Shown: in pieces, positions 4,301-46,800 of the stretch | How the letters are laid out: each line of letters starts with the position of its first letter | How positions within the stretch are numbered: position 1 is the stretch's first letter | Assembly: GCA_965112155.1 (NCBI GenBank) | Contig: OZ218098.1 | Strand: one strand, 5' to 3' | Source of the DNA: Podarcis liolepis | Lineage: Eukaryota | Length of the DNA stretch: 64,000 bases | Translations under genes and position numbers: made by a program | The notes under the pieces: generated by a model | Told to the model about the DNA's origin: nothing | Database searches by the model: none | The model's input: the letters and a program-made list of their open reading frames with translations, nothing else

Positions 4301-6168
4301 TGGGCTTACATGAGTAAATAAACCAAGTAAAGCTTGAATTAATTTTAACTACTGGTGCTATTTTTTAAAGATTTATCTGCTTCTGGTGTTTAATTATAGC
4401 AGAATAAAAAAAAAATGTTTGAGATTGCAACCCTACACACCTGGAAAGATGTCCCACTGAACTCAATGAGACTTACCGTATTTTGCGCCCCATAGGACGC
4501 TCCGGCCCATAGGACGCACCTAGTTTTTTTGGGGGGAAATAAAGAAAACATTTTTTATTCCCCCCCCCCCCAGGTGCGGGGCTGGAAGAACCAGGTCGGG
4601 GAACAGTGGGAAGGCACGCTCTGCCTCCCCGCTGTCCCCCGAGCTTGTGGGGCTGGCGATGGGGAGAAGTGCGCTGATCCCAGGACTGCAGGCAGCTCTG
4701 CGCCGCCATTCGGAGCGGGGCGGGGCTTCGCCCCCCCGCTCCCGATGGCCGCGCAGAGCTGCGCTGATCCCAGGACTGCAGGCAGCTCTGCGCTGCCATC
4801 CGGAGCGGGGCGGGACTTCGCGCCCGGCTCCCGTGGCCGCGCAGAGCTGCGCTGATCCCGAGACTGCAGGCAGCTCTGCGCAACCCTCGGATCCTGTCTC
4901 CCGAGGGTTGCGCAGAGCTTCCTGAAGCCTGGAGAGCGAGAGGGGTCGGTGCGCACCAACCCCTCTCGCTCTCCAGGCTTCAGCGAAAGCCTGCATTCGC
5001 CCCATAGGACGCACACACATTTCCCCTTCATTTTTGGAGGGGGAAAAGTGCGTCCTATAGGGCGAAAAATACGGTACTTCTAAGACAATATGCACAGGAC
5101 TGCACAGTTAAGATGGCATTTCCTTAATCAAAATTTGCTTTAAATTCCTTCGATTTCAAGGCATGTACTGTATGTAACGTAAAAAAAATAAAAAAAAAGA
5201 CCAGTTAAAAGATAAAATGTTCATGAACTTAACATTATTCAATTGGTAGCTAGCTCTTGCCAAACTTGCAAGCCAGGATCCAAAATAGGACATGAGCAGA
5301 TGTATCAGTACAACAGGTTTTAGTTGCCTCCCTAATTTGACTGAACAGCAACATGCCTCCTTACTTCTTGCCTGCTATATATTCCATGCTACCACTACTA
5401 GATGATCTGATATATTTTTCGCTCTGTAAGATGCACCAGATCATAAGACGCACCTAGTTTTTGGAGGAGGAAAACAAGAAAAATAATATTCTGAATCTCA
5501 GAAGCCAGAACAACAATTGGGATCGCTGCGCAGCGATCCCTCTTGCTGTTCTGGCTTCTGGGATAGCTGCGCAGCCTGCATTCGCTCCTTAAGACTCACA
5601 CACATTTCCCCTTGCTTTTTAGGAGGGAAAAGATGAGTCTTATAGAGCAAAAATTACGGTAAACGGCTTGAATCCAGAATTCTCTTTCACTGATGAAAGC
5701 ACAGTGAGCAGAAGTGATTTCCTCTTCCCCACAGCCTCTTGTGTCCTCCATACAGTGGTACCTCGGGTAAGTACTTAATTCGTTCCGGAGGTCCATTCTT
5801 AACCTGAAACTGTTCTTAACCTGAAGCACCACTTTAGCTAATGGGGCCTCCTGCTGCCGCTGGAGCACAATTTCTGCTCTCATCCTGAAGCAAAGTTCTT
5901 AACCCGAGGTACTATTTCTGGGTTAGCGGAGTCTGTAACCTGAAGCATATGTAACCTGAAGCGTATGCAACCCGAGGTACCACTGTAATGTGTTCCATAG
6001 GTTTCGGGGACTTTCCAGAACATTGTGGGAGAGCTGTAAGATGAACAAGTGAATATTGTCTCCCCTTCCTACTGCTAGTGGAATCCTTTGCTAGATTGGA
6101 AGCCTTTCACAAGCAGAGGGGCACTTAGAAACTTAGGATCCAAGCCAATCTTTGCATTTCGGTAGAAA

Positions 6169-11049: not shown

Positions 11050-14000
11050 TCTCTGTACGTTGGTTGTGGCTTTATTCCGTCAGCCAAACCATACAAAAGG
11101 GCCTGAGGGACAGGGCACCACGGCTGTCAGCAAATCATACTATTTAATTCATTGCCTCATGGCTTATTGCATGCTGGTCTTCAAAACAGGTTGCATCCAT
11201 GAATTATTTCCTTAAGAACCACTGTCAAATTTATTAACAAGTATTCATTACACCGCACAATTTACCTGGATCTGCTCCGATCTTTATTTCGGTCTGAGCT
11301 TCTTTCGCGGTCTCTGTCTCGATCTCTTTCCCTGTCCCGGTCTCTGTCTTTAGTGCGGTCCCGATCTCTGTCCCGTTCTCGTTCACGCTCCCGTTCCTTT
11401 TCCTTCTCTCTTTCACGCTCTCTCTCCCTCTCTCTTTCACGCTCCCTTCTTTCTCTTTCACGCTCCCGCTCCCTCTCTCTTTCACGCCGTTCTTTTTCAA
11501 TTTCTTGTCTCTCTTTCTCCTTTTTGCCTTTTTCCTCCTCCAATTTCTAGAAACCAAGAGGATTTTCAAAGTTAGCATGTAGCTATAGTCGGAGGCCCCA
11601 CCCCACCACCACGCACAACACCCAAGGCTGGTAGTGAGCATTTCAAGAACACCAATAATTTAACATTTAAATATTTAACAGCTTACTGACAGCTCATAAG
11701 AAAAAAAGTTCTGCAATTGTAAGGCTAGATTTCGTGCAAAAAGCATATATCTAACATAGACTGGCAATCTCCAACCTTGGAAAGAAGGGCAATGCTCACC
11801 TCATATATGCATATGCTGACAATTACATAGTGCATTGCCATCAATAGTTCACAGAAAACTCCCGAGCCACGAAAGATAGAAAAGAGCTTGAACACAGATG
11901 AATTTTTAGCTGGCAAAGTTAATCCTGCCCATGTAGGCAGATCATTTAGTAGGATGCTGACAGACAAGATTACCTCATACCACAGCCAAACCAAATTCAT
12001 TCTATGCAAGGATGGGAAGTAAAATCAACTTCAACTGTGTACGTTACTTGAAATGTTTGGAAGGATACATCTTACCAATCACTTTATTCTCCCCAACTTT
12101 TTTTATTTTTTTTGCATTCACTGCTTAAAGTAATGGTTTCTAAAGAACAGGATCCTCAAGAAGGTTGGAAATCGCACATAGACAAGACTAAAAGGTTATA
12201 CAGTACATTTTTAATGAATTCTATACAAAAGTGCATTTTTTAAATTCAAAAAGTCATGCCTATTACCAAAACTCCCATGAAGACAATAGAAAAATAAAAT
12301 CTCATAAAAATGATAGATAAATCCATCCTTGGAAGCAATTGGTGTGTGTTAACTTACAGGTGCTGTGCTAGGACATGGACCGCCAACACTGGATTAACCT
12401 TGCCTACAAGCTATATTTCTGGGAGGAAGAGCAAGTACATGGTTCACAAGTAAACCCAAAAAAGGAAGGAAAAAAAACATAAGCCAAATATCAGCCTGAT
12501 GGGTGCCAAAATATTAAGGGCATGGTCCTTCCACATCCACGTGTTGTGCCTGAAGAGATCAACGTAGGGCTTAACAGAGCCCATTTCTCACGCCTCCTCT
12601 CCTTAGCGCACATGTGCAACCAGTGCACCATACCATTTCAGCCAATAAGAGGCTCTTGCATCACTACTCAGCCCCCTCTTGTCACTTGGTGGAAGGAGCA
12701 GGATCCGTTCCTTCACCAAGTGGCAAGTGGAGGAGGGTGTAAGAGAAGGGCACAAGCCTCTTATTTTAAGCAGTGGCCTGGTTCATTGCCTGCATGTATG
12801 CTAAGGAGAAAGTAACAGAGCACCATTATTCCTTACAGGATCTGTCTGTGCACGGGTGCAGCATGAGTGAGGAAGGATTACACCCTAAATATATTGTATG
12901 CAGTTGATGCAAGGGGGGAAGAGCAAAATCGCCCCATTTGGCACCGTGTTTACCACCGTTGAAATAATTTATAAACTGGAACAATAAAGTGTGCATTTAT
13001 TTCTCTCAACAAAGAATTTAAGACAACTTTAAAAACAATCTTACCTGTCAGACAGTCTTCTCGTGTGCGCTCATGGACCAGAGAACCAAAACAAAGTCAC
13101 AGTAATAAAACTAATAAACAAAAGGTCAATATATCTAACCACCACACTAAATGGCACCAAAAGTGAAATATAGGGAGGATGGTGTTAGATACATTGAACT
13201 CACAAAAGAAAAGGGTATTTGAGAATGGTAGAGAACAGCCATAATGGAGGAGGAAAAAGTGAAAGTGTACAGAATGTGGCAACCTACTTTCTAAGTGAAA
13301 TGCTCTCATACAATATAATTTCATTTAGTGTATTAAGGTTATGCTAGCTATATTAACTTTCAAAAGCAGAACTTACCTCAAATTTCGTATACTTTTATAG
13401 AAAAGTTTATATACTGAAATGATCGATACTTACAGATTATTTTAGTAGTTCCAATAAGAATGTCTTTGGTTAAGTTCCGGGATTCCCCCGCAAAAATTTC
13501 TTTTGTAGTAAAAGCCATGATAAAAATTTGCATTGACTTTTGGCATCTTAAAGGCTTTTATTTCAAGCTTCTCTTTTCTTAAAAGCCAAATCAGCACTGC
13601 TGCTTCATATTGAAAATTTAAGTAATAGGCTGCTTCCAAGTGAACAAAAGGATGTTTTATAGGAAATGAGGGGTGGAAAGGATTCAGGATATGCTAATAA
13701 AGTAATGAGCAAAGAAGGTAGGTAGAAAAAAAAATGTAAAATCTTACCTTCGGTTCTCTTCAGACTCATCTGTGCTGTAAATGGACACCCCCTGCAATGC
13801 TGATACCCTAACAGTCCGATTGTTTGTAAATTCTAACCAAAAAACATGCAAAGGTTCACTGTGCTCATTAGCCAGCCCCTTTTTGAACATCCCACCCAAT
13901 ATATGAAATGGCCATTTTTTATTAGATTTAGTTCCATCTATTAGAAAAGGTTAATTCAAAATATTCCCCCAATAGGATAGATCAAAGGCAGCAAAATGCC

Positions 14001-17000
14001 CGATTGCTTCTGAAACAGTGAAGCATATTTTGATTTTGTTTTAACCACATTATTTCTTTACATTTCAGAGGTATGTTGGGGCTTGGAAATAAGACGATGT
14101 TTCACCACTGAACAGTTTCATACATCTTCTGGAACAATTATCCTCAGGTTCTCATTCCAAAGTTATACTACAATATGTTGCATTGCCAGCAATGTACATC
14201 CATTTTTGCTTTAAAGTAAGTGTGATCCTGTAACCAGAGTACTTTTTACCCGTTTTGTAAATTCACACCATTATACCAATATTAGCAAACTACAAGCACT
14301 CATTTCAGGGATAAATACTTCACTGAGCGTGCAGTACTCCAGCCTTGGTGGGCAGTTCATATTCCCTTAGAAGCTAACATCAAGAGACAGTGCATGCATA
14401 GCTTGAATTTCACCCCCCCTTAAACCACCCTTCCCAACCGGAACACATTCACAAATTCACATTACAGAAACTTCTGTAGGTGGGAACCCTGAGGTAGGAT
14501 TTGCTGTGTAAACACATTTCCAAGCCAGTTACCCCTTTGCATATTTTTCTGAGGGGGCATCCATAAATAATAAAAAAAACAGAAGCTCATACTTACATCC
14601 TATTCCATGTTACTTTCCAAGCTGTGTTTTTCATCTTGCATTAGTCACCATATGATCTCTATCATAATGGTGGGGGTCAATGAATAGATTAGCTTAATGG
14701 GAATTTACAGTTCTTCCATGCATCTAAATTTTGGTAAAGTCTGATAACCACTAACCTAATTTAATTTCACCCCCATTCTCAACTCAGAGCTATTAAATTA
14801 AATCTCAAGTTTAAATTAAGCAGCAGAGCTCAGTAAAACAGAGTTTGAATTATGTCTTACAACTGCTTGAATGATGTGGGGGCCAGAATGTTTTACGCAG
14901 CAGCCCAGTCTAATTATTGGATCTTATGTAAATGGTTTTAGCTGCTTTGGGTTAATTTTAAGAAAAGTGGGGTAGATGTGTTTGATTTTTTAATGTATTC
15001 ACACTGAGGAGACTGCAAGGTAGTCATTAGAAAATAAAAAGGACAAAATAAGACGATTTAAGTGGGATTTTGTCCTTAGTGGCTTTTTAGACACACATTA
15101 CGCCTACTATATGTGATATGGTCATGTGCTTTTAAATTTTCTAAAGGGGGAGGGAAACTGGATTTTGCAAAAACCTAATTTTGTATAAGGTACAAAAACA
15201 AGTATACTACCTTGTGCGTATCTCTGAATTTACTGATCTCTCGGGATATCAGGTCCCTTTTATCTTCTTCCATTTCAATAGCATTTATATCCTCCTGTAA
15301 GAGAGAAAGGGGGGCAGAACAGGAGACAGAATATTAAAACCCATCTGCACAGAAACAGGAGAACCAAAAGAAAAGCTGAAGGTTAGATGTTTTGTACCAG
15401 TCTTGTAAGAGATAAATAAAGGCCTTCTGCAGTACCAAACCTCACAGTCTGATGTTAAATGAATGAAAAAAAAAATTAGATGGACACGAGTCACAAATCT
15501 GGTAACTAGCAGTAAACATAGTCATTGTCAAAGCCTACAATGTAAACGAACCTTGGTGATGAGTGGATAGGGTATCAGTGGGGCCACTGGAAATCTGCGG
15601 AAAATCTGCGGAAAAATCCACGGAGATTTCTTTTTTAAAAAATAGATTGCACACTACTCTGGAAAAAAAACAATGTTCTGTATGTTTGCAGAATAAGCAA
15701 TATTGCATTGCTGTGACCGTAGGTCTGACTCAACAAAGTTACAGAAGAACCTCGCTAATTCTCCGTTTACTGATCTACTTCTCGGCAAAGGTTTGCTGGG
15801 TGCCACCTCACCCTGGCATGTCTCCATTTAAAATTGCAGAACATTAACATTCTAGGAAATCTTGCAAGCTAAGCTACGCTTGTTAAAAGTGGCCTTTTGT
15901 GGTACTATTATAAGCCTTGTTTTGTTTCTTACTCGCTAATTCGCAAAATTGTAATTATATCAAGGGGCGGGTTGCCAACAGTTACTGCAAATTAGCGAGG
16001 TTCCCCACATCTGAAATCAAGAGTCAGATTTCACTTGCCATTGCTTTTCCCCGCACTCTCAATTTTCCCACATTATCCCTCATCTTTTCAACCAACAGAA
16101 TGGGCAAGGGAACCAGTCACAATTATAAGCATTCAATAAAGGGGATAACAGTGCCTCAAAACCAGCTTTACACGGCACCCACCACAGTTTTATATACTTC
16201 CCTCCCCCCACCATGCACAGAGCTTTCTTAGTCCCACACTTCCCAACAGATAAGGGGATGAGAAGTCATGCTCGTGTCCCATGTTCATCCTTACAAAATA
16301 AAGATGCACTTCCACTATTTCAAGGGGCAGGAAGACAAGGACACAGTTAAATGTTTCATTGTTCTGATAGACCACACTAAATTTAAAACCCAGCTACATC
16401 AGCAAGGTGTGGCTACAGGTCACCCTAAAACTAGCAGTTATTAAAGGAGGAAGATCAATATTCAGTTCTTTTAACATGGGCTTCTAAAAAGTAACCTCTC
16501 AGTACCATTATGTCTCTCGATACCATTATATTCTTGATTATATACATAACACAATCCATAGCATGGATAATAACTTTTAAAGAGAGAGACATGGCTTGCC
16601 TATAAATAAGTGCAGAATGCAAAAAAAATCAGTGCAAGATTAAGTTAAGTGGAAGCTAAAGAACAGTGGGAGGTGCACTCACTCCCTGAGTGAGAAGCAT
16701 TATTTCTTGCACTGCCTTTTCATACACTTCACCAGCAGCCCAAGCTATCTTATTGCTTGCTATCAGCACAACATAAGGGAGAAAGTTAAGCTTAGTAAGA
16801 AAGGCTGCAGACAGAAACCAAAATTCACCCCCATCTCTTGCTATGAGTGGCAGGTATTAAGAGCCCATCATTGAAACAATCATGACGCATTTTCAAGGCT
16901 GGCATAATTACTACTAAGCTGTACCCTTTCCCCCCAGAGGAAAGCAAAAATTAGTGTAATCATCAGCAGGGTTATCCACAGAAGGGGGATTATAGCATTT

Positions 17001-20000
17001 TGGGTCAAATGTTACACTTATAAAGTATGGACGTCACTGGCCCAACAGCCAAATATTAACAAACCATTTTGTAACATCATGGCTTTCATCCCTCAAGGAT
17101 AAGAAAGAGCTTCTTAGCTATGTGCACAAACATAATTAAATCAGGACAGTGAAGAAGGGCTGCCAATCAGCTGAGTTGTGGCTATAACACCAGTGCAAAC
17201 CTCTATGACCCAGTGACTTAGGGCATTTAAGATGTCAAACATTACAGGCAGAATCTCTTTTAGGGTCTTAAAATCATCTCCCCATCTCAAAAAAACATTT
17301 TGCAATTACTTCAATACATGTATTTTAGAAGGGATGAAAGGCTGAATCAAACCTGCTGAGATTCAAACCTGTAGCTCCAAGAAGTCTAGGCATTTGTGAC
17401 CTTTGTGTTCACAGACCTACAACATCCACAGGGTTTGGCATCTAGAACTGATTTAATTTCAGTATGAAACATGAAAACTTCTGCTAACATCAAGGTTTGT
17501 TGATTTGTGTTCTCATCAGATGCTTTGAGCTAATGTATTGGCACAGGGTTTGGCCCTTATGTAGGGAGATGAAGTAAATCTGTTTGTGTCCAAAATCAAA
17601 ACACATACATCCTCCTTCTTTTCTTTTTTCTTCTTCCTGGGATGAGAGTCAGACTCTTGGGAGGGGGCATTGAGCTCGCTGGAATATTCCCGTATTAACA
17701 CTTCAATGGCCCCTTTAATTAGCTGGTCTCTTCTCTTTGCTTCTTCATCGAGGGCTTCGTCATCATCAGTTGTAGTTTCTGGCCTGGTGTTCTAAAGAAT
17801 AACACAAATCTTGAAGTCAAGCATATGGGACATAGCAGAACGGCATCCAAAATGTTTACTTCATATGAACTAAATAGGTCTATTACATGTAGCTAGCAAG
17901 TGGAAGTGTTAGGTGTACTTAACATCCTTACAATCAGCCTTTAACTACGGATTCTAGTAGGTCCTGGCTAGGGCTGGGCGATATCTGGTTTTCAACATTG
18001 TGCTATATCACCAGCTAAACATTGCAATATACTGATACATCACAAGGTCTGAAATAAGGATAGAGCTATGTAGAGGCATTGGCTGGCTTCAGTTTTCCCA
18101 CATTGGGATTTCTGCATAACTAACACACCCACACAGCCACACCCCATGATTCTCAATATATTGCCAGGTCAAAAATTATGAAACCGATATAATGATATGG
18201 ACTTCAACCAGTTTTGGATGGTATATCAATACGTTGCCCAGCCTTAGTCCTCACAAGAGTGATACACAGAATTTTTCAATTGGCAAACCCAGAAAGTTCA
18301 CATATATCCCCATCATTTTCTCAAGACAAAAGGCCTTCCTAGCACTCTACTACTTATTTTCATTGTTGGAAGACAAAGCTAAATTAATGACTAAAGCACT
18401 GCTTGTGCTGCAAGAATTCAAAATGTTTTATTTTGTACAGAACCAAACAGCTGACAAAGCTGCAGAGTGATCACACACAACAGCATTGCCTTCAGTAAAG
18501 ACCAGCTGAGTAGTGCTCGGCACTTGCTGCAGAAAGGTCCTCTGTGCATTTCTGGGAAGTGGTACCCAATAACTCCTGGGTGAAGAGAGCAGCATGCACT
18601 CTTGGGTGCTGCACAAAGGTGCATAAGATGCATTTAGGCAGCAAGATCCAACACTTTTCGTGCCTGCCAATCCTTTATAGCTAAGTCTCTTTTGGTTCCT
18701 CTGCCATACCACCTTCCTCCCAATTTTGAAGCTGGGGCGGTGGCAGGAACCACCACTCTACTGCTGAGATGTACCTTTCAAGCTGAGAATAATGCTTGCC
18801 ACTCATCACACATGACAGAGGGCAAATGAATTTGTTGAAGCCTGGCACAAACTTTAAAGAGAATGCTACACTACAATGTGTGTGCTCTCGGAAGAAATAG
18901 AAATAATTTAGTGTGGATTCATGTGATATTTTTATGCAGCAAGTACAACATAATACAGTGCAGGTTTCAAATTAATACGCTATGTCAGCAGTTATAGAAA
19001 TATTCTGTTCCGTAGGATTAAGAATGCTGTTCAACAAAGCGGAGAACACATACAAGGCAACACCGTACCAACCTACCCTTTGGGTCACACATTACCAAAC
19101 TTATACACAAAGTTTGTCTGCAGTATAAAACAGACTTTTGGATGTAAGTGGTCATACTGCACAATGACAATACATGTGTGTAAAATGCTTTAACATACAT
19201 ATCTGTAGACTGTCACTTCCACACTAGAATTGCTGAATTTCAATTTTCCGTGTAAGATGAATGTAACATAGACCTTAAACTATTAATAAAAACATTAATA
19301 TATACACAGTTGCCTACAAAACTTTAGTGATTATATATTTAAAGGCTTATAGCTTGCCTCTCGGAAGGCTCAAAGGGGCTCACAACAATTCTAAATCTAA
19401 AAATAAATAAATCACAGAATCAAATACAGTAAGAAATGAAAATCCCCACTTTCCTCCTTACAAATAGTAAATAGATAAATTCTCATCTGCACATAGAAGT
19501 ATGAATGACCTGAGGCCAAGTGACTTCAACTTGCTCCAGGCCATTCTCAGCCTATAGCCTGGCTGCAAGGAAAACCTAAATACAGAAAAAGAATGTGCAT
19601 ATTACATTTTTTAAAATCTTCCATCCCATCAAACATTTGTCACTGCTGTTGCTACTGAGGAGCAGTGGGAAAAAACAGGCAATGTCCTACCATGTTTTCC
19701 CTCCCTTTTTCATACACTTGTATTAAACTTAAATAATAAATTCTTGCCTTAAAAAGAGGGGATGGGAATCTCACCTGAGAATAAGAGATGGATGTCCAGT
19801 CAAATGCCAAGTGGATAAAGAGTGAATAGAAAAGAGACAGGCTTATGGAGAAGCAGTAGCTAAGAAGTAGGGGCAGGAGGGGATTTTCAGCTGGTGCAGA
19901 CGCTGCAATGTCAAGGAGGAACAGCCTGAAATGACCTAATAGGTAGTGCTGCTTAGGTGGTAGTAAAAGAAATTAAGGGGGTAACAGTATTAGTCAGGGA

Positions 20001-23000
20001 TGGAGCCAGACATCTGCCTTATTTAGTTTCTCCATATTTTAAGACAGCAGGAATTTATGGAGAGCTTTCTTGTCTGCTCATGTGAAATAAATGCAGTGGT
20101 ACCTCGTGTTACGTACTTAATCCATTCCGGAGGTCCATTCGTAACATGAGGCGCGCTTTTGCTAATGGCGCCTCCTGTGCCCCTGGAGCGCAACTTCCGC
20201 TCGCATCCTGGGACAAGGGGCATCTACTTCTGGCTTAGCGGAGTGTGTAACCCACAGTATTCATAAGGCGGATGGTACGTAACACGAGGTAGCACTGTAC
20301 TAAAATACTCTTACTTTACAGGCTGTGTATCAAAAGGGTAAACCCTGAACCCCTTTCTATGGCACATGGATAACTAAATTTAACTCATTAAAAGCTTTTA
20401 ACTACTTTATCACACAAACATAGAAAAAAGTTAACAATGCATTAAAACACTTATAAAGATGTTTCAGTGAGCGGGTTGGCTGTGTTTTGCTTCTGGTCTT
20501 TATTTCTCCCTTCCTTGCCCCAAGGACAAATTACAGTGGTGCCTCTCAAGACGAAAAGAATCCTTTCTGTGATTCTCTTCGTCTAGCAGTTTTTTCGTCT
20601 TGCGAAGCAAGCCCATTGACAGATTAGCGGATTAGCGGCTTATCTGCTGATCAGATCAGCTGATAAGCGGCTTGCGAAGCAAGCCCATAGGAAATTCGTC
20701 TAGCGAAGCACCTCCAAAACGGAAAACTCTTTCGTCTAGCGAGTTTTCCGTCTTGTGAGGCATTCGTCCTGCGGGGCACCACTGTATAGTGAATGGTGAG
20801 GCATGTATTCCTAACCAGGAGTCTGCTGAAGCTGCTAGAGTACAGCAACACTGCAAGCTATGCAAGATTGCTTAAGTTACTACAATTAAGAAAATGCACT
20901 ATATTTCACATCTTCTTTGGCTGAGCCTAGGCTACAGATTTACATCAAGATAAAAAAATTCTAAATATTTTGTGTTTTTCTCTCTCTAACATTATTTCAG
21001 AAAAGCTGTAGTATTAGGTAAGGTAAAGGTAAATGACCCCTGAACGGTTAAGTCCAGTCAAAGGCAACTACAGGGTGTGGCGCTCATCTTGCTTCAGGCC
21101 AAGGGAGCCAGCATTTGTCCACAGACAGCTTTCTGGGTCATGTGGCCAGCATGACTAAACCACTTCTGGCACAACAGAACACCATGACGGAAACCAGAGC
21201 GCATGGAAACATTGTTTACCTTCCTACCACCACAGTACTTATTTATCTACTTGCACTAGCATCTACTTTCTTGCATGGATCCAAACTGCCAACCTTCCGA
21301 TCGGAAAGCCCAAGAGGCTCAGTGGTTTAGACCCTTTAACACTGTATTATTAGCAGACAGCTTATTATTATATACATTTTTTAAAGTGAAATCACTGGTT
21401 GATAGGCAAGCCTGTAAAAAAATTCAAGGACTTGCAACTTGTGAACTTATTTGAAATTTTGATATAGTGCACCTGCGTGAAATGACTCACTTTCTAGACT
21501 GATTTCCTCATGTTTTGCATCTTAGCCAGGGCTGACTGTTCTTGGGACTATTATATGCCTCACTTCTTCCAATCTTACTATTTTCTCTTCTAAATACTTA
21601 ACTGGGAGGGTGTTTACAAATGTGATTTGACATGCAGTTTGTGGCTAGGTTCACCTGCTTGTGCTTGTTATGAAGCTATCACTTAAATGGTTAGGTTGAA
21701 CTATGGTGGCCTGAGAACATATATGGACACAGTGCTTGTTGGCAGAGGACATGCAAGCACATGTACAACTTTGTACATTAAGCAAAGCTTTTCATGCTGG
21801 CCATACCCAGCTGGAATCAGATTTTTTTTATTTTGGAGTTGGCAGACTCTGCTCTGGATCAGCAAGTCTAGCAGAGAGCAGGGCATCTGGTTTCCTCCTG
21901 AAAATGGTTGGGTTTGATCTGAGAGACTCCAGCTGCTCATCCCTTAACCTTCTTCTGTCAGCCAAAGTTTTATAATCCAGTTTCTCAAGCAGAAAGTGCA
22001 GTTTGTTGGGGATTTGAAGTTTACACTCAAATTCTGATCATGAAAATTAAACAAAAGAACAGTGCAACAGTCATCTGCAGAAAAGGTGTAATAAAGTCAG
22101 CATAGCAGGTTAAATTGCAACAGAGAATAAGCAAATCAGGTAAAAGAACCAAGAGCACTTAATGCCAATCCAATTTATTTGTAATTCAATTGTTTCCTGT
22201 CCCAGTTTAGCATAGTTACACACAACATACCCCATTGGAAGCCCTTTTCTTCGCTTTCCATTCATCTAGCTGAGCCTTCGTCTTGGCATCAACTTTCACA
22301 AGTAGTTTCTTTTCTCCAATTTGGAGATCATGTAGTAGCCTGAGCGCACGTAGTGTGGATTCTGGTTCTTTATACTCGCAGAACCCAAAGGCTAGGGAAT
22401 GAATAATTGAGATTTGTAAAAGCAAATTTTAAAAAATTATATATGCACATGCGAGCAACACTCACACACAATTGCCTTTAATGTCAACTATTTGTTTTAT
22501 GATTTCACCAAATATATGGCAGAACCTCAGTTAAAACACATTTTCAGCCCAATCCCATAAACCCAAGCAATTTCAATTCAGAGGATGAAGGCTACACCCA
22601 TCCTGTGCTGCTGCCTTTCATCTGGAATCCCATTACGGTCAGTTACTAGTTTTTCAAAAATACTAGGTTGCTGCAACATTTAACTGGCTGCATAAAGTTA
22701 CAATCCACTCTTCAGTAGTGGGGGAAGCTGGTTAGCATGGCAGCATTAATTCTCAGTGCTATGTTGGTACAGTACAATTGGGTAGCAAGCAGTACCAGAT
22801 CAAGGGCCCAGATCACCACTGATCTGCAGTGGAAGGCACAACTTGTGTTCCATCCGATACACTTATTGACTCACAGAATAGCTCAGAGTAAAAATAAAAT
22901 TAAGCCCTTGCTGCTGAAGCGTGGGCACTTCAGTAATTTAACCAAGCTTGCGTATATCCTCATAGCTATTAGAGGGAAAAGGAAAGGATATATACCTTGA

Positions 23001-43800: not shown

Positions 43801-46800
43801 GCCTTCTTTATACCCTCTTGATGAAAATCTCTTTGTTTCAAATCGTGTGTCTGTGTCCCTTTATTCAAAATATTGGACAATTATATTTCAGTCTTAGAAA
43901 TTGTCCAAATGGCAGTGATACATGTGGAATGATTCCTGTTTTAATATATAATACGATGTTATTGTCGCTTGTACTGTATTTTTTACACAAATTTGTCAGT
44001 GTTATTTATAAGTAAAAAATTATATCTATTAAAAATCCATGTGCACTAGTGATATAAGGATCAACTGTGTTCATCCAGGTAAGAAATTCCCAAACACCAC
44101 TATTTAAACCCACACTGATATATATCATCAGTGATATATATCAGTGATATATGCCATGCAGTGTACATGTGGATTTTTCTCTTTGTACAAAATTGTGGTT
44201 GTTTCTAAGTGGGACATATATTTATAACATTGCTCATCAGAATTTGGGTGTTTTGGAATTTCTTACTTGGCTGAACAGGGTTGATTCCTGCATCAAATTC
44301 ACTATGGATTCACCACATGTACCATTTTTGGACATTTATGTCCAATGCTTTCTAACAAACAAATCTGACTGACTGACTGACTGACTGACTGACTAGGTGG
44401 GGCTGAGAATGCCCCCTGTCTGGCACCCTGGAGGGCTGTTCAAGCCAAACAATAGAGGGACCAAATAATCAGACTAGGTATAAGGCCACTTCCTAAGTAA
44501 GGCATCCACTGTCAGTTTCCATACTTAGTGATAAGGGAATAACTTTCCCCTTATCCATCTATACTGTTTCTATTGTATAGTCAAATGCTAGTGACTGACA
44601 CTGAGGTAAAGCTTTCTCTGTTACAGAGATAAGGAAAAGTGTAACTGGGTGGGGTTCTGGGTATGAGGTTGCTATTGCAGGCAGAAGAAGAGCACAAGTG
44701 AAATAAAATGGCAGCCCTAACAACAGTGTGAAAGCTTACAGGCTTGTAAAATGCGTTGTAACTTCTGTTCTCTTCTTAGGCAAGTCTAGAGATGGGAAGG
44801 CCTGGAAAAAACCCGGAAAACTGGGGGGAAACCAGTCCCCCCCTTTTTTCACCCCCCCAAGCTGTTTTTTCCCTGTTTGGGAAAAAAACGAAAAAAACCC
44901 CTGGTTTTTCTCCCAATTTTCCGCTTTTTTCCCAGGCCTTCCCATCTCTAGACGGTGGTAAGGTTCCTCATCTACAGGTCAGATTGAAAATAACCCATTT
45001 ATAAACTGGTGCAGTTCCACTGACTTTGAATAGACTCCTTAGGAGCAAGGGTGTCATATCTCATGGGCAGCAAGCAGTTATGAATATCCTTTTAGAGAAA
45101 GCTTTTAAAAAATGATTTACCTATTAACTTTGACTTTATTGTGGGGTGCTGTTTTTAGCTCTTTTATAGCTTGACTGTCATGCTGTCTTGGATTTTCTTT
45201 TTTTATTACTGTTTTATATCTTTTTAAAGTTGAAAGTTCTTTTGAAAGAGTTATCTCTCTGATGCAACTACAAAAGTTGTTGAATTAACAACACAACCCT
45301 GTACTCGGAAGTGAATCTCACTCTGTTCAACAGGGCATACTCCCAAGAAGGTTTTTATAGGATTCAGCCTCAGTTTTCTATCTCATTTGTCCTTGTTTCT
45401 AGCTGTTTCATCAGCAATGGGTGGGTGGATGGAGCTGTTTTCTAATGCCATAGATGTCAAGGTTGTATTTGACTTAAGTGAGGACAAACCTTCCTGTGGC
45501 TTGGCTTTAAGGCCTTCAGTTATGGCTTAGCAGCACATCTGTTCTCTTTTCTAATACAGTGGTGCCTCGCAAGACGAAATTAATCCGTTCCACGAGTCTC
45601 TTCGTCTAGCGGTTTTTTCGTCTTGCGAAGCAACCCTATTAGCGGCTTAGTGGATTAGCGCTATTAGCGGTTTAGCGGCTATTAAAGGCTTAGCGGCTAT
45701 TAAAGGCTTAGCGGCTATTAAAGGCTTAGCGGATTAGCGGCTAAAAGGCTATTAGCGGCTTAGCAGCTTAGAAAAAGGGGGGGAGCGGGAAAAAATCGGA
45801 ACACTTGCAAGACGTTTTCGTCTTGCAAAGCAAGCCCATAGGGAAAATCGTCTTGTGAAGCAGCTCAAAAACGGAAAAGCCTTTCGTCTAGCGGGTTTTC
45901 CATCTTGCGGGGCACCACTGTAAACATAATGGTGACATTGAAAGTGGATCCCTGACAATTAAGGTTGCCGATTTGCAACCTGGAGAGTCTGCTTCTCTAA
46001 CAGCCTCAAAGAAGTAGAAGAGAATTCAGGTGTGGCTTCTCCCTCAAAATATCTACCTTCATTTAAATAGTGTACATTGTGGAAAATTGCTGTACCATTT
46101 TTAAAGGCTGCAAGACAAGCAGAAACTTTTCCTCTCGCTTCAGCTGTATGCCAGGAAAAGCCTCGTCCGCTAAATTTTGCTTATCACACAGTTGTTAGAT
46201 GTAGAGGAGTCCTGCTAAGGAGAAGAAAGATGGTACAATTTATGTGATATATGCTTTAAATTATATGTATAATTTCATATCTCATTGACAAAGTCAAATT
46301 GATGCTGCGGTTGGACAAGAAAATACATGACATCCATTCATATATGACCCCCCCCCCAAATAGTTCATAGTTTTAGTTCACATTTTCATTGGCTCACTCC
46401 ATACTGGAAAAATGTATGTCAGTTGTATGTAATTAAAGTGGCAAAGAATCTATGATTGGATCATATTTTTTCCTGGAGGTAAGATAACAGCATAGTTCAA
46501 CTACGCTCAAATATAATAACAGAATGTTTTCTAGATGCTAATAATTTTAAAATAGAGTAAGAGTAAAGGGATAAATCCTTGCACAATCATTTAAGTTTTT
46601 TGCCCCTCTTGCTAAGATGCGACATCCTTAGGCAGGAATGTAAATATTCCTGTGTGGGCTAGCTATGTTACCGTCCATTCCTTGCCTAAACAAAAATGTC
46701 TTTAGCAGGCACCAGTATCTCAGAGTGTTACTGGCTAAAAGAATGTCACTTGCAGTTACAAGTCATGTCCCAGAAGCAGGACTGTTTCAGCAGTGGGTTC

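Follow-up and report, generated by a model that had tools for sequence, protein, structure and literature searches.

The question raised by this locus is whether three short elements in one intron compete for pairing in the pre-mRNA, and whether they have been kept by selection. The original prediction placed them in intron 7 of RBM25, on the minus strand of the window, by which we mean the whole 64-kb stretch of DNA that was analysed (Table 1). The assignment of the gene holds: one exon of the window matches the PWI domain of PDB entry 3v53, 'RNA-binding protein 25', with an E-value of 4e-17, and the RBM25 exons of the window have Pfam matches to PWI and RRM_1. Protein searches used the exons singly and not as a joined (spliced) model, and a search of the protein collection with exon 7 returned ORF fragments only. 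There are only 4 RNA reads over the locus, near exon 7.

The trio lies upstream of a small exon, exon 8 (the IFRRFPVAPLIP exon), and arm A ends 138 nt short of the acceptor of this exon. The donor of exon 8 is weak (AAG/GUUCGU), and its peptide is missing in the fish-like RBM25 proteins P0008, P0035, P0039 and P0041. The acceptor is duplicated in a tandem repeat whose second AG lies 11 nt downstream, and its use would shift the frame.

Table 1. Features of RBM25 from exon 7 to exon 9 in transcript order (positions in the window; exon numbers are nominal)
Feature	Position	Strand	Remarks
Exon 7 (…IEVLIREYSSELNAPSQESDSHPRKKKKEKKED)	17609..17791	-	
Intron 7	17608 down to 15606	-	
C' element, shared 'docker'	15986..16006	-	sense GGGGAACCUCGCUAAUUUGCA; pairs with B or A
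B element, proximal partner	15932..15945	-	sense UGCGAAUUAGCGAG; 14-bp hairpin with C', 40-nt loop
5' splice-site-like GUAAGA	15927..15932	-	sense CGA/GUAAGA; starts on the final base of arm B
Short conserved island within the loop between A and B	15868..15883	-	sense CAAG[C/U]GUAGCUUAG
A element, distal partner	15744..15761	-	sense GAAUUAGCGAGGUUCUUC; 18-bp helix with C'
Conserved intron stretch from arm A to the exon 8 acceptor	15606..15743	-	80-92% identity to contig L001; presumably contains branch site and polypyrimidine tract
Tandem 11-nt repeat duplicating the exon 8 acceptor	15591..15612	-	CCGCAG/AUUUUCCGCAG/
Exon 8, 54 nt	15552..15605	-	encodes IFRRFPVAPLIPYPLITK
Exon 9 (EDINAIEMEEDKRDLISREISKFRDTHK)	15211..15294	-	lies at the downstream end of a conserved block (15159-15780)

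The prediction started from a 10-mer, CTCGCTAATT, said to occur twice directly and once inverted. We found it at 15751-15760 (+), 15932-15941 (+) and 15990-15999 (-), and no further exact copy is present in the window. The direct repeat shared by A and B spans 11 nt; the inverted repeat 15747-15760/15990-16003 is perfect over 14 nt, while the inverted repeat 15932-15945/15986-15999 covers 14 nt with one mismatch. As had been proposed, both these repeats and the duplex energies of the sense RNA (the minus strand) allow C' to pair with either of two downstream partners. Pairing with B, 40 nt away, gives 14 bp including one G-U (-20.5 kcal/mol), and pairing with A, 229 nt away, gives 14 perfect bp, or 18 bp with 3 G-U (-26.9 kcal/mol), enclosing a loop of about 229 nt. 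The two helices are mutually exclusive, because the same C' bases (15989-15999) pair in both. Complementarity of the flanks is split, with GAAC common to A and C' and YGCA common to B and C'. The cores are not embedded in longer duplications; flank similarity is at shuffle level. The deviations from perfect pairing had been described as G-U wobbles in the sense RNA and mismatches in the antisense, and the antisense duplexes are indeed weaker, at -22.5 kcal/mol for C':A and -17.6 kcal/mol for C':B.

When the window is shuffled with its dinucleotides kept, 0.08 inverted repeats that are perfect over 14 nt and lie within 300 nt are expected. About 12 clusters of perfect inverted repeats of at least 13 nt within 300 nt occur in the window, at least some of which are TE-like. 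The inverted repeat alone is not decisive because of these similar clusters; the cross-species data were.

A scan with the two-arm pattern identified two metagenome contigs, L001 and L002, which carry the RBM25 ortholog of a much more diverged reptile. The two contigs stem from separate metagenomes and share 99.8% identity; L001 and the window are colinear for about 16 kb. Between the window and L001, 23 of the 107 third codon positions in exons 7-9 differ (about 21%), and deep intron 7 is about 50% identical in a global alignment. The same scan of genome contigs and viral contigs gave no match, nor did a protein search with the ORF spanning B and C'. The comparison covers two independent lineages only, the window's own clade (organisms A to H) having at most 2% divergence, which is uninformative for conservation.

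Conservation beyond the species was one of the points on which the prediction had been said to depend, and A, B and C' are all kept in L001 and L002. A and B are each 100% identical to L001 and C' is 95% identical, and none of about 1400 deep-intron background windows of equal length reached the identities of the arms. Exact runs extend over 26 nt at A (15739-15764) and 22 nt at B (15929-15950), with 13 (+4+3) nt at C'; elsewhere in the intron interior, the only exact runs of at least 12 nt are three 12-mers near exon 7. B and C' form islands of about 20 nt in an otherwise unalignable intron, and the conservation of A continues into the block around exon 8. Exon 8 and its flanks (15504-15624) differ from L001 at 1 of 121 nt, and the tandem acceptor repeat is unchanged. 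The arms hold four CpGs (15753, 15934, 15942 and 15996), all of which are kept in L001, compared with 0 of 4 in the loops. Conservation alone is not rare in RBM25, because its introns carry many conserved patches, and the invariance of the arms is by itself silent on pairing.

The evidence that bears on pairing comes from the way in which the conserved sequences fit each other. Among 84 conserved runs (1544 nt in 16 kb), the only complementary matches of at least 10 nt are A:C' and B:C', and about 0.005 matches of 14 nt would be expected by chance among these runs. The conserved extent of C' corresponds to the union of its two pairing footprints, and the conserved blocks, 21-26 nt long, extend a few bases past the helices. 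A single substitution is present in the 53 arm bases, an A/G difference at 15989 in L001 and L002, which replaces U-G by C-G in both helices of the sense RNA and would be a C-A mismatch in the antisense; the change is neutral on the sense strand. With the conserved G-U pairs that exist only in the sense RNA, the window's A:C' helix reaches 18 bp and that of L001 reaches 21 bp. Compensatory changes had been proposed as a further check: this one-sided G-U/G-C change is compatible with pairing, but no double compensatory change was found within the arms in the two lineages compared. Since the arms are invariant, there is no strict covariation proof. An outer extension of A:C' with one two-sided change (C-G to U-A) was rejected as not significant (p ~0.10). 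Taken together, the sequence comparisons support the view that purifying selection acts on A, B and C' jointly.

Could the trio be something other than a selected RNA structure? A young transposon or MITE was our first reading, on the basis of the CpG excess and the TE hairpins in the window, and it was suspected because the lizard genome is MITE-rich. The more general form of this explanation is a neutral remnant of a small transposon (a MITE whose inverted repeats are both terminal and subterminal) or, alternatively, a local templated duplication without function. It is consistent with the other inverted-repeat clusters mentioned above, with a CpG observed/expected ratio of 0.69 in the element as compared to 0.09 in the rest of the intron, and with ACA at both ends (15741-15743 and 16007-16009), a possible 3-bp target duplication that is at chance level. 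However, the pattern in L001 and L002 led us to reject the young element, and it makes the neutral remnant very unlikely as well: the site is orthologous in a deeply diverged species, and a decaying insertion cannot leave the arms intact and the interior randomised. The element occurs only once in the window, and over it the organism H DNA contigs show neither excess depth nor extra contigs; in these data, there is no sign of the dispersed transposon named in the original prediction as a possible source. A transposon origin followed by exaptation may apply. The comparison also indicates that host DNA in metagenome contigs can serve as an outgroup that separates a selected hairpin from lizard transposon hairpins.

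Selection could also act on the DNA or on unpaired RNA. The three CTCGCTAATT copies might be transcription factor sites in an intronic enhancer or silencer, their orientation being irrelevant and the complementarity a by-product; the 10-nt core is present in all three copies in either orientation, it contains a homeodomain-like TAATT, and the invariance that withholds strict covariation proof would suit such sites. We consider this unlikely, as the conserved blocks are longer than one site, the flank complementarity is split with C' matching the union of the helix footprints, the sole change and the conserved wobble pairs make sense on the RNA strand, and B and C' are isolated islands of 20 nt, not a multi-site enhancer block. 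Quite unlikely, too, is that GAAUUAGCGAG, which occurs twice, binds a protein or a trans-acting RNA in single-stranded form, with C' as a mimic, a decoy or unrelated. That A and B share an 11-mer in the same transcript orientation, and that conservation runs past the helices, would be explained in this way, but the exact reverse complement in a third island and the split flanks would not, and no Rfam family or known small RNA was matched by the element. An RNA structure may, finally, be selected for an output other than exon 8 splicing, such as intron turnover, transcription pausing or the processing of an intron-derived RNA. The evidence for structure alone names no output; we nevertheless give this possibility little credence, given that A runs on into the conserved block around a nearly invariant, weak-donor exon and that no RNA family was found.

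Having weighed these alternatives, we conclude that the intron 7 pre-mRNA of RBM25 probably holds a selected, bistable RNA structure. With loop costs included, the C':A and C':B states differ by about -7 to +2 kcal/mol, and they are close in energy both in the window and in L001, where both helices are intact. Arm B is paired at 100% in both species, and the C':A helix is present in the MFE fold of L001 (z -4.4). The single-sequence fold of the window's sense strand has a weak z-score of -1.17, and the dominant helix varies with the length of the sequence folded.

The order of the elements in the transcript suggests how such a structure might work. Transcription reaches C' and B before A, and the C':B hairpin would therefore form first; C':A could replace it later, so that the module could act as a co-transcriptional switch with attenuator-like logic, in which A would be the regulated site, C' would mask it and B would compete for C'. 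While C':B is formed, the donor-like GUAA at B would be closed and A free; once C':A is formed, A would be masked, 229 nt would be looped out, and B would be exposed together with its donor-like motif. The pyrimidine-rich GGUUCUUC within A lies at the upstream border of the conserved block that leads up to exon 8. The most likely output would be the usage of the weak-donor exon 8, that is, its inclusion, its skipping or the use of a non-productive site. The donor-like GUAAGA that the prediction had noted at arm B lies where it was placed, but it is conserved only in part: L001 has GUAAAU, in which GUAA is kept and the +5 G is lost.

Two candidate exons in this intron were rejected. For a 52-nt pseudo-exon (15984-15933) with splice sites in the C':B arms, the acceptor AG reads CAC in L001, and a 40-nt poison exon (15812-15851) shows background identity and has lost its donor GU in L001.

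RBM25, whose yeast homolog Snu71 belongs to the U1 snRNP, is a factor in the choice of 5' splice sites (PMC9808567), and feedback of RBM25 on its own pre-mRNA is therefore plausible. A more ambitious model would have an ancient, squamate- or amniote-wide co-transcriptional switch through which RBM25 senses its own level. It would alternately hide and expose a decoy donor at B and an exon 8 control site at A, setting productive versus non-productive splicing, and would act with a second conserved helix and conserved donor-like motifs in intron 9; as a whole, we regard this model as doubtful. Our literature search found no paper tying RBM25 to such an RNA structure. In a catalogue of conserved complementary regions (PMC8052449), RBM25 is absent from the main text, and the supplement names it once, in a table that lists accessions of ENCODE data files, and not as the host of a structure. 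With three elements of 14-21 nt near a nearly invariant exon of a core splicing regulator, the locus offers a compact model in which kinetic switching of RNA during splicing can be tested directly. If the structure feeds back on RBM25, it would add a layer of RNA structure to splicing-factor homeostasis.

To our knowledge, few competing RNA structures of vertebrate pre-mRNAs are well supported, and ATE1 is the textbook case. The mechanism itself, competition between conserved helices within introns, is established: in mammalian ATE1, the intronic elements R1 and R4 compete for R3 (PMC7797038). RBM25 resembles ATE1 in having one conserved intronic element with two conserved, mutually exclusive partners in a vertebrate gene, as well as in similar helix lengths and energies near balance. 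In contrast, ATE1 chooses between two homologous, mutually exclusive exons, as shown by mutagenesis, whereas the competition proposed for RBM25 has one small exon downstream and none duplicated.

The likeness to docking sites that had been suggested holds for the geometry. As in insect Dscam1 exon 6 and 14-3-3zeta (PMC4691838, PMC6071210), a docker lies upstream of its selectors and the pairings are exclusive, and selector A is upstream of the exon that it could control. RBM25, however, has only two selectors and no cluster of variable exons, and B is followed by no alternative or conserved exon; the 170-nt interval from B to A contains no conserved exon-like unit. Judged from its sequence, the trio is not a true docker/selector system, because the exon cluster is missing. 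By analogy, the logic proposed for RBM25 matches that of bacterial transcription attenuators (terminator, antiterminator and anti-antiterminator), in that three segments are made in order, the middle pairing would form first and could be replaced by a stabler one, and kinetics would decide, although these belong to another domain of life and RBM25 would have splicing, not termination, as its output.

Among intronic structures, the trio is also similar to PCCR-type boxes, for which conserved complementary regions have been catalogued (PMC8052449): conserved complementary intronic sequences of at least 10 nt in one intron, with an energy below -15 kcal/mol. It would likewise adjoin a regulated exon of a gene-expression regulator, exon 8 of RBM25 being a putative one. 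PCCRs are two-part, whereas RBM25 has a three-part arrangement with a built-in competitor. Both arms lie in conserved intron, and the two duplexes have energies of -26.9 and -20.5 kcal/mol.

RBM25, the minus-strand host gene, was identified from a window exon that matches PDB 3v53, 'RNA-binding protein 25', in its PWI domain (E 4e-17); the Pfam domains found were PWI and RRM_1. Its intron 7 carries three short elements, of which C' can pair with B in a local hairpin or with A in a long-range helix. As originally predicted, CTCGCTAATT, a 10-mer, has plus-strand copies at 15751 and 15932 and a minus-strand copy at 15990; these are its only exact copies in the 64-kb window. The repeat finder returned two 14-nt inverted repeats here, 15747-15760/15990-16003, which is perfect, and 15932-15945/15986-15999, which has a single mismatch; it also linked A and B by an 11-nt direct repeat. 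On the sense (minus) strand, both proposed pairings were recovered, with 18 bp including three G-U pairs for C':A (-26.9 kcal/mol) and 14 bp including one G-U pair for C':B (-20.5 kcal/mol); the antisense versions are weaker (-22.5 and -17.6 kcal/mol, respectively). Single-sequence folding gave z values of -1.17 (sense) and -2.13 (antisense), and an Rfam search returned no meaningful match.

A search of metagenome contigs with both outer arms, spaced as in the window, yielded L001 (Ga0181612_179854) and L002 (Ga0065711_1048871), contigs of 9-12 kb from environmental or host-associated metagenome assemblies. They are colinear with the window over ~16 kb, a stretch that includes exons 7, 8 and 9 as well as the ER-rich exons. 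Each derives from a separate metagenome, and the two are 99.8% identical across their 4.8-kb overlap. Both are reptile-like host DNA, not human; host DNA in metagenome contigs can supply an outgroup where no genome collection is at hand. Of 107 third codon positions compared in exons 7-9, 23 differ from the window, most intron sequence is unalignable, and deep intron 7 shows 50% identity in global alignment, which is the background level. The conservation evidence comes from two independent lineages. The intron is also present in public runs under eight organism labels, the farthest of which (H) is only ~2% different; near the element it differs at 15765 and 15847 and has a deletion at 15968, all outside the arms, which is meaningless at this distance. 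Depth over the element was flat in the public runs, zero extra contigs aligned to it, and the four reads obtained from an RNA run all fell close to exon 7.

The predicted elements persist as exact or near-exact islands in the distant reptile ortholog. In L001, A lies in a 26-nt exact run (15739-15764), B in a 22-nt exact run (15929-15950), and C' reads, in the sense direction, GGGGAACCTCGCTAATT, then one variable base, then GCA; none of ~1400 deep-intron windows of equal length reached the identity of any arm. Loop lengths are alike between the two species (40 vs 36 nt; 170 vs 178 nt), while loop sequences are unrelated. The conserved extent of C' is the exact union of the two pairing footprints, identity ending at the next base on each side. 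The sole substitution in 53 arm bases, at 15989 (A in the window, G in L001), turns a U-G pair into C-G in the two helices simultaneously in the sense RNA; on the antisense strand it would produce a C-A mismatch. This agrees with the sense-strand G-U pattern claimed before. The G-U pairs that extend A:C' only on the sense strand are conserved, and the L001 A:C' helix, with 21 contiguous pairs, dominates the fold (z -4.4). The arms are nearly invariant and show no double compensatory change, and an apparent one in the outer A:C' extension is not significant. Scanned without bias, the 84 conserved exact runs (1544 nt in 16 kb) contain no complementary matches of at least 10 nt other than A:C' and B:C', the chance expectation for a 14-nt match being about 0.005 by our own arithmetic.

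A young transposon remnant was the reading initially expected because perfect inverted repeats of at least 13 nt form about a dozen clusters in the window, at least some TE-like, and because the element is CpG-rich: its 263 nt hold 8 CpGs (o/e 0.69), whereas the other 1.6 kb of the intron has an o/e of 0.09. For perfect inverted repeats of 14 nt with arms no more than 300 nt apart, dinucleotide shuffles gave 0.08. The single-sequence folds did not speak against the transposon reading. This reading was overturned by the distant ortholog, where the arms are kept and the interior is randomised. Since all arm CpGs are conserved (4/4) and none of the loop CpGs is (0/4), the sequence pattern indicates that the CpG richness is constraint, not youth. 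The same island pattern contradicts neutral transposon decay, though the module may still have arisen from a transposon that was later exapted. The main rival, a DNA-level motif cluster with a TAATT core, leaves unexplained the split complementarity of the flanks, the match of C' to the helix footprints and the G-U pattern on the sense strand; likewise, the 11-mer as a binding site for a protein or trans-RNA would not explain its conserved reverse complement. Four other places in the window carry perfect inverted repeats (13-22 nt, arms within 300 nt) and look like ordinary lizard MITEs: 5751-5988, which has a Tc1/mariner-like TACAGTGGTACCTCGGGT end, 20100-20292, 44784-44953 and 4872-4984.

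The probable target of the paired module would be the exon 8 region, with A bordering its conserved block. A forms the upstream edge of this block (15159-15780, 86% identical to L001), which spans exon 8, intron 8 and exon 9, and the exon 8 acceptor sits 138 nt downstream of the end of A. Exon numbers 7-9 follow the original prediction, and exons were searched singly. Across the 121 bases of exon 8 and its flanks (15504-15624), a single one differs from the distant ortholog, compared with ~10% in exons 7 and 9; the exon 8 donor is weak (AAG|GUUCGU) and the acceptor duplicated. The fish-like RBM25 proteins P0008 (Coregonus), P0035, P0039 and P0041 lack the exon 8 peptide, the exon 7 peptide being joined directly to that of exon 9, including in the one from Coregonus. 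Because near-invariance, a weak donor, a duplicated acceptor and absence in fish-like proteins are usual marks of such exons, exon 8 looks, from sequence comparison, like a regulated, possibly tetrapod-specific exon. A second AG lies 11 nt downstream of its acceptor, and its use would drop 11 nt and shift the frame.

As transcription proceeds in the order C', B, A, the weaker local C':B hairpin could form first and the stronger long-range C':A helix then replace it. With either helix forced, the ensemble energy of A:C' minus B:C' varied with folded flank length, from -6.9 to +1.9 kcal/mol in the window and from -7.2 to -3.0 kcal/mol in L001. The GUAAGA donor-like motif proposed at B is present in the window, but L001 has GUAAAU. 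In its mode of working the trio resembles both the competing structures in ATE1 introns (PMC7797038) and docker/selector systems (PMC4691838, PMC6071210), but the lack of an exon cluster keeps it outside the docker/selector class proper; it belongs more broadly with conserved complementary intronic regions (PMC8052449). Our literature search found no paper describing such a structure in RBM25. RBM25 acts as a 5' splice-site factor and is homologous to Snu71, a protein of the yeast U1 snRNP (PMC9808567), and tethering it at downstream intronic positions promotes alternative exon inclusion (PMC12868881); given these activities, RBM25 could plausibly feed back on its own pre-mRNA.

Features of the RBM25 locus in the window (L001 and L002, metagenome contigs with the orthologous reptile locus)
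Feature	Position	Strand	Detail
Exon 7	17609-17791	minus	peptide …KKEKKED
C'	15986-16006	minus	intron 7
B	15932-15945	minus	intron 7
Small conserved island	15868-15883	minus	CAAG[C/U]GUAGCUUAG, within the A-B loop, the rest of which is randomised; kept in L001
A	15744-15761	minus	intron 7
Tandem 11-nt repeat doubling exon 8 acceptor	15591-15612	minus	CCGCAG/AUUUUCCGCAG/; conserved in L001
Exon 8	15552-15605	minus	peptide IFRRFPVAPLIPYPLITK
Exon 9	15211-15294	minus	peptide EDINAIEMEEDKRDLISREISKFRDTHK
Second conserved complementary pair, intron 9	14514-14566 with 13840-13867	minus	duplex -29.3 kcal/mol
Donor-like motif AGGUAAGAUU	13037, 13740	minus	in conserved runs common to window and L001/L002
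Donor-like motif CUGUAAGUAU	13426, 14589, 25909	minus	in conserved runs common to window and L001/L002

The core of the intron 9 pair, AAAAAUAUGCAAAGG with CCUUUGCAUGUUUUU, ~650 nt apart, is identical in L001. In the small island between A and B, nine bases in L001 equal the U2 snRNA segment CAAGUGUAG, probably by chance.
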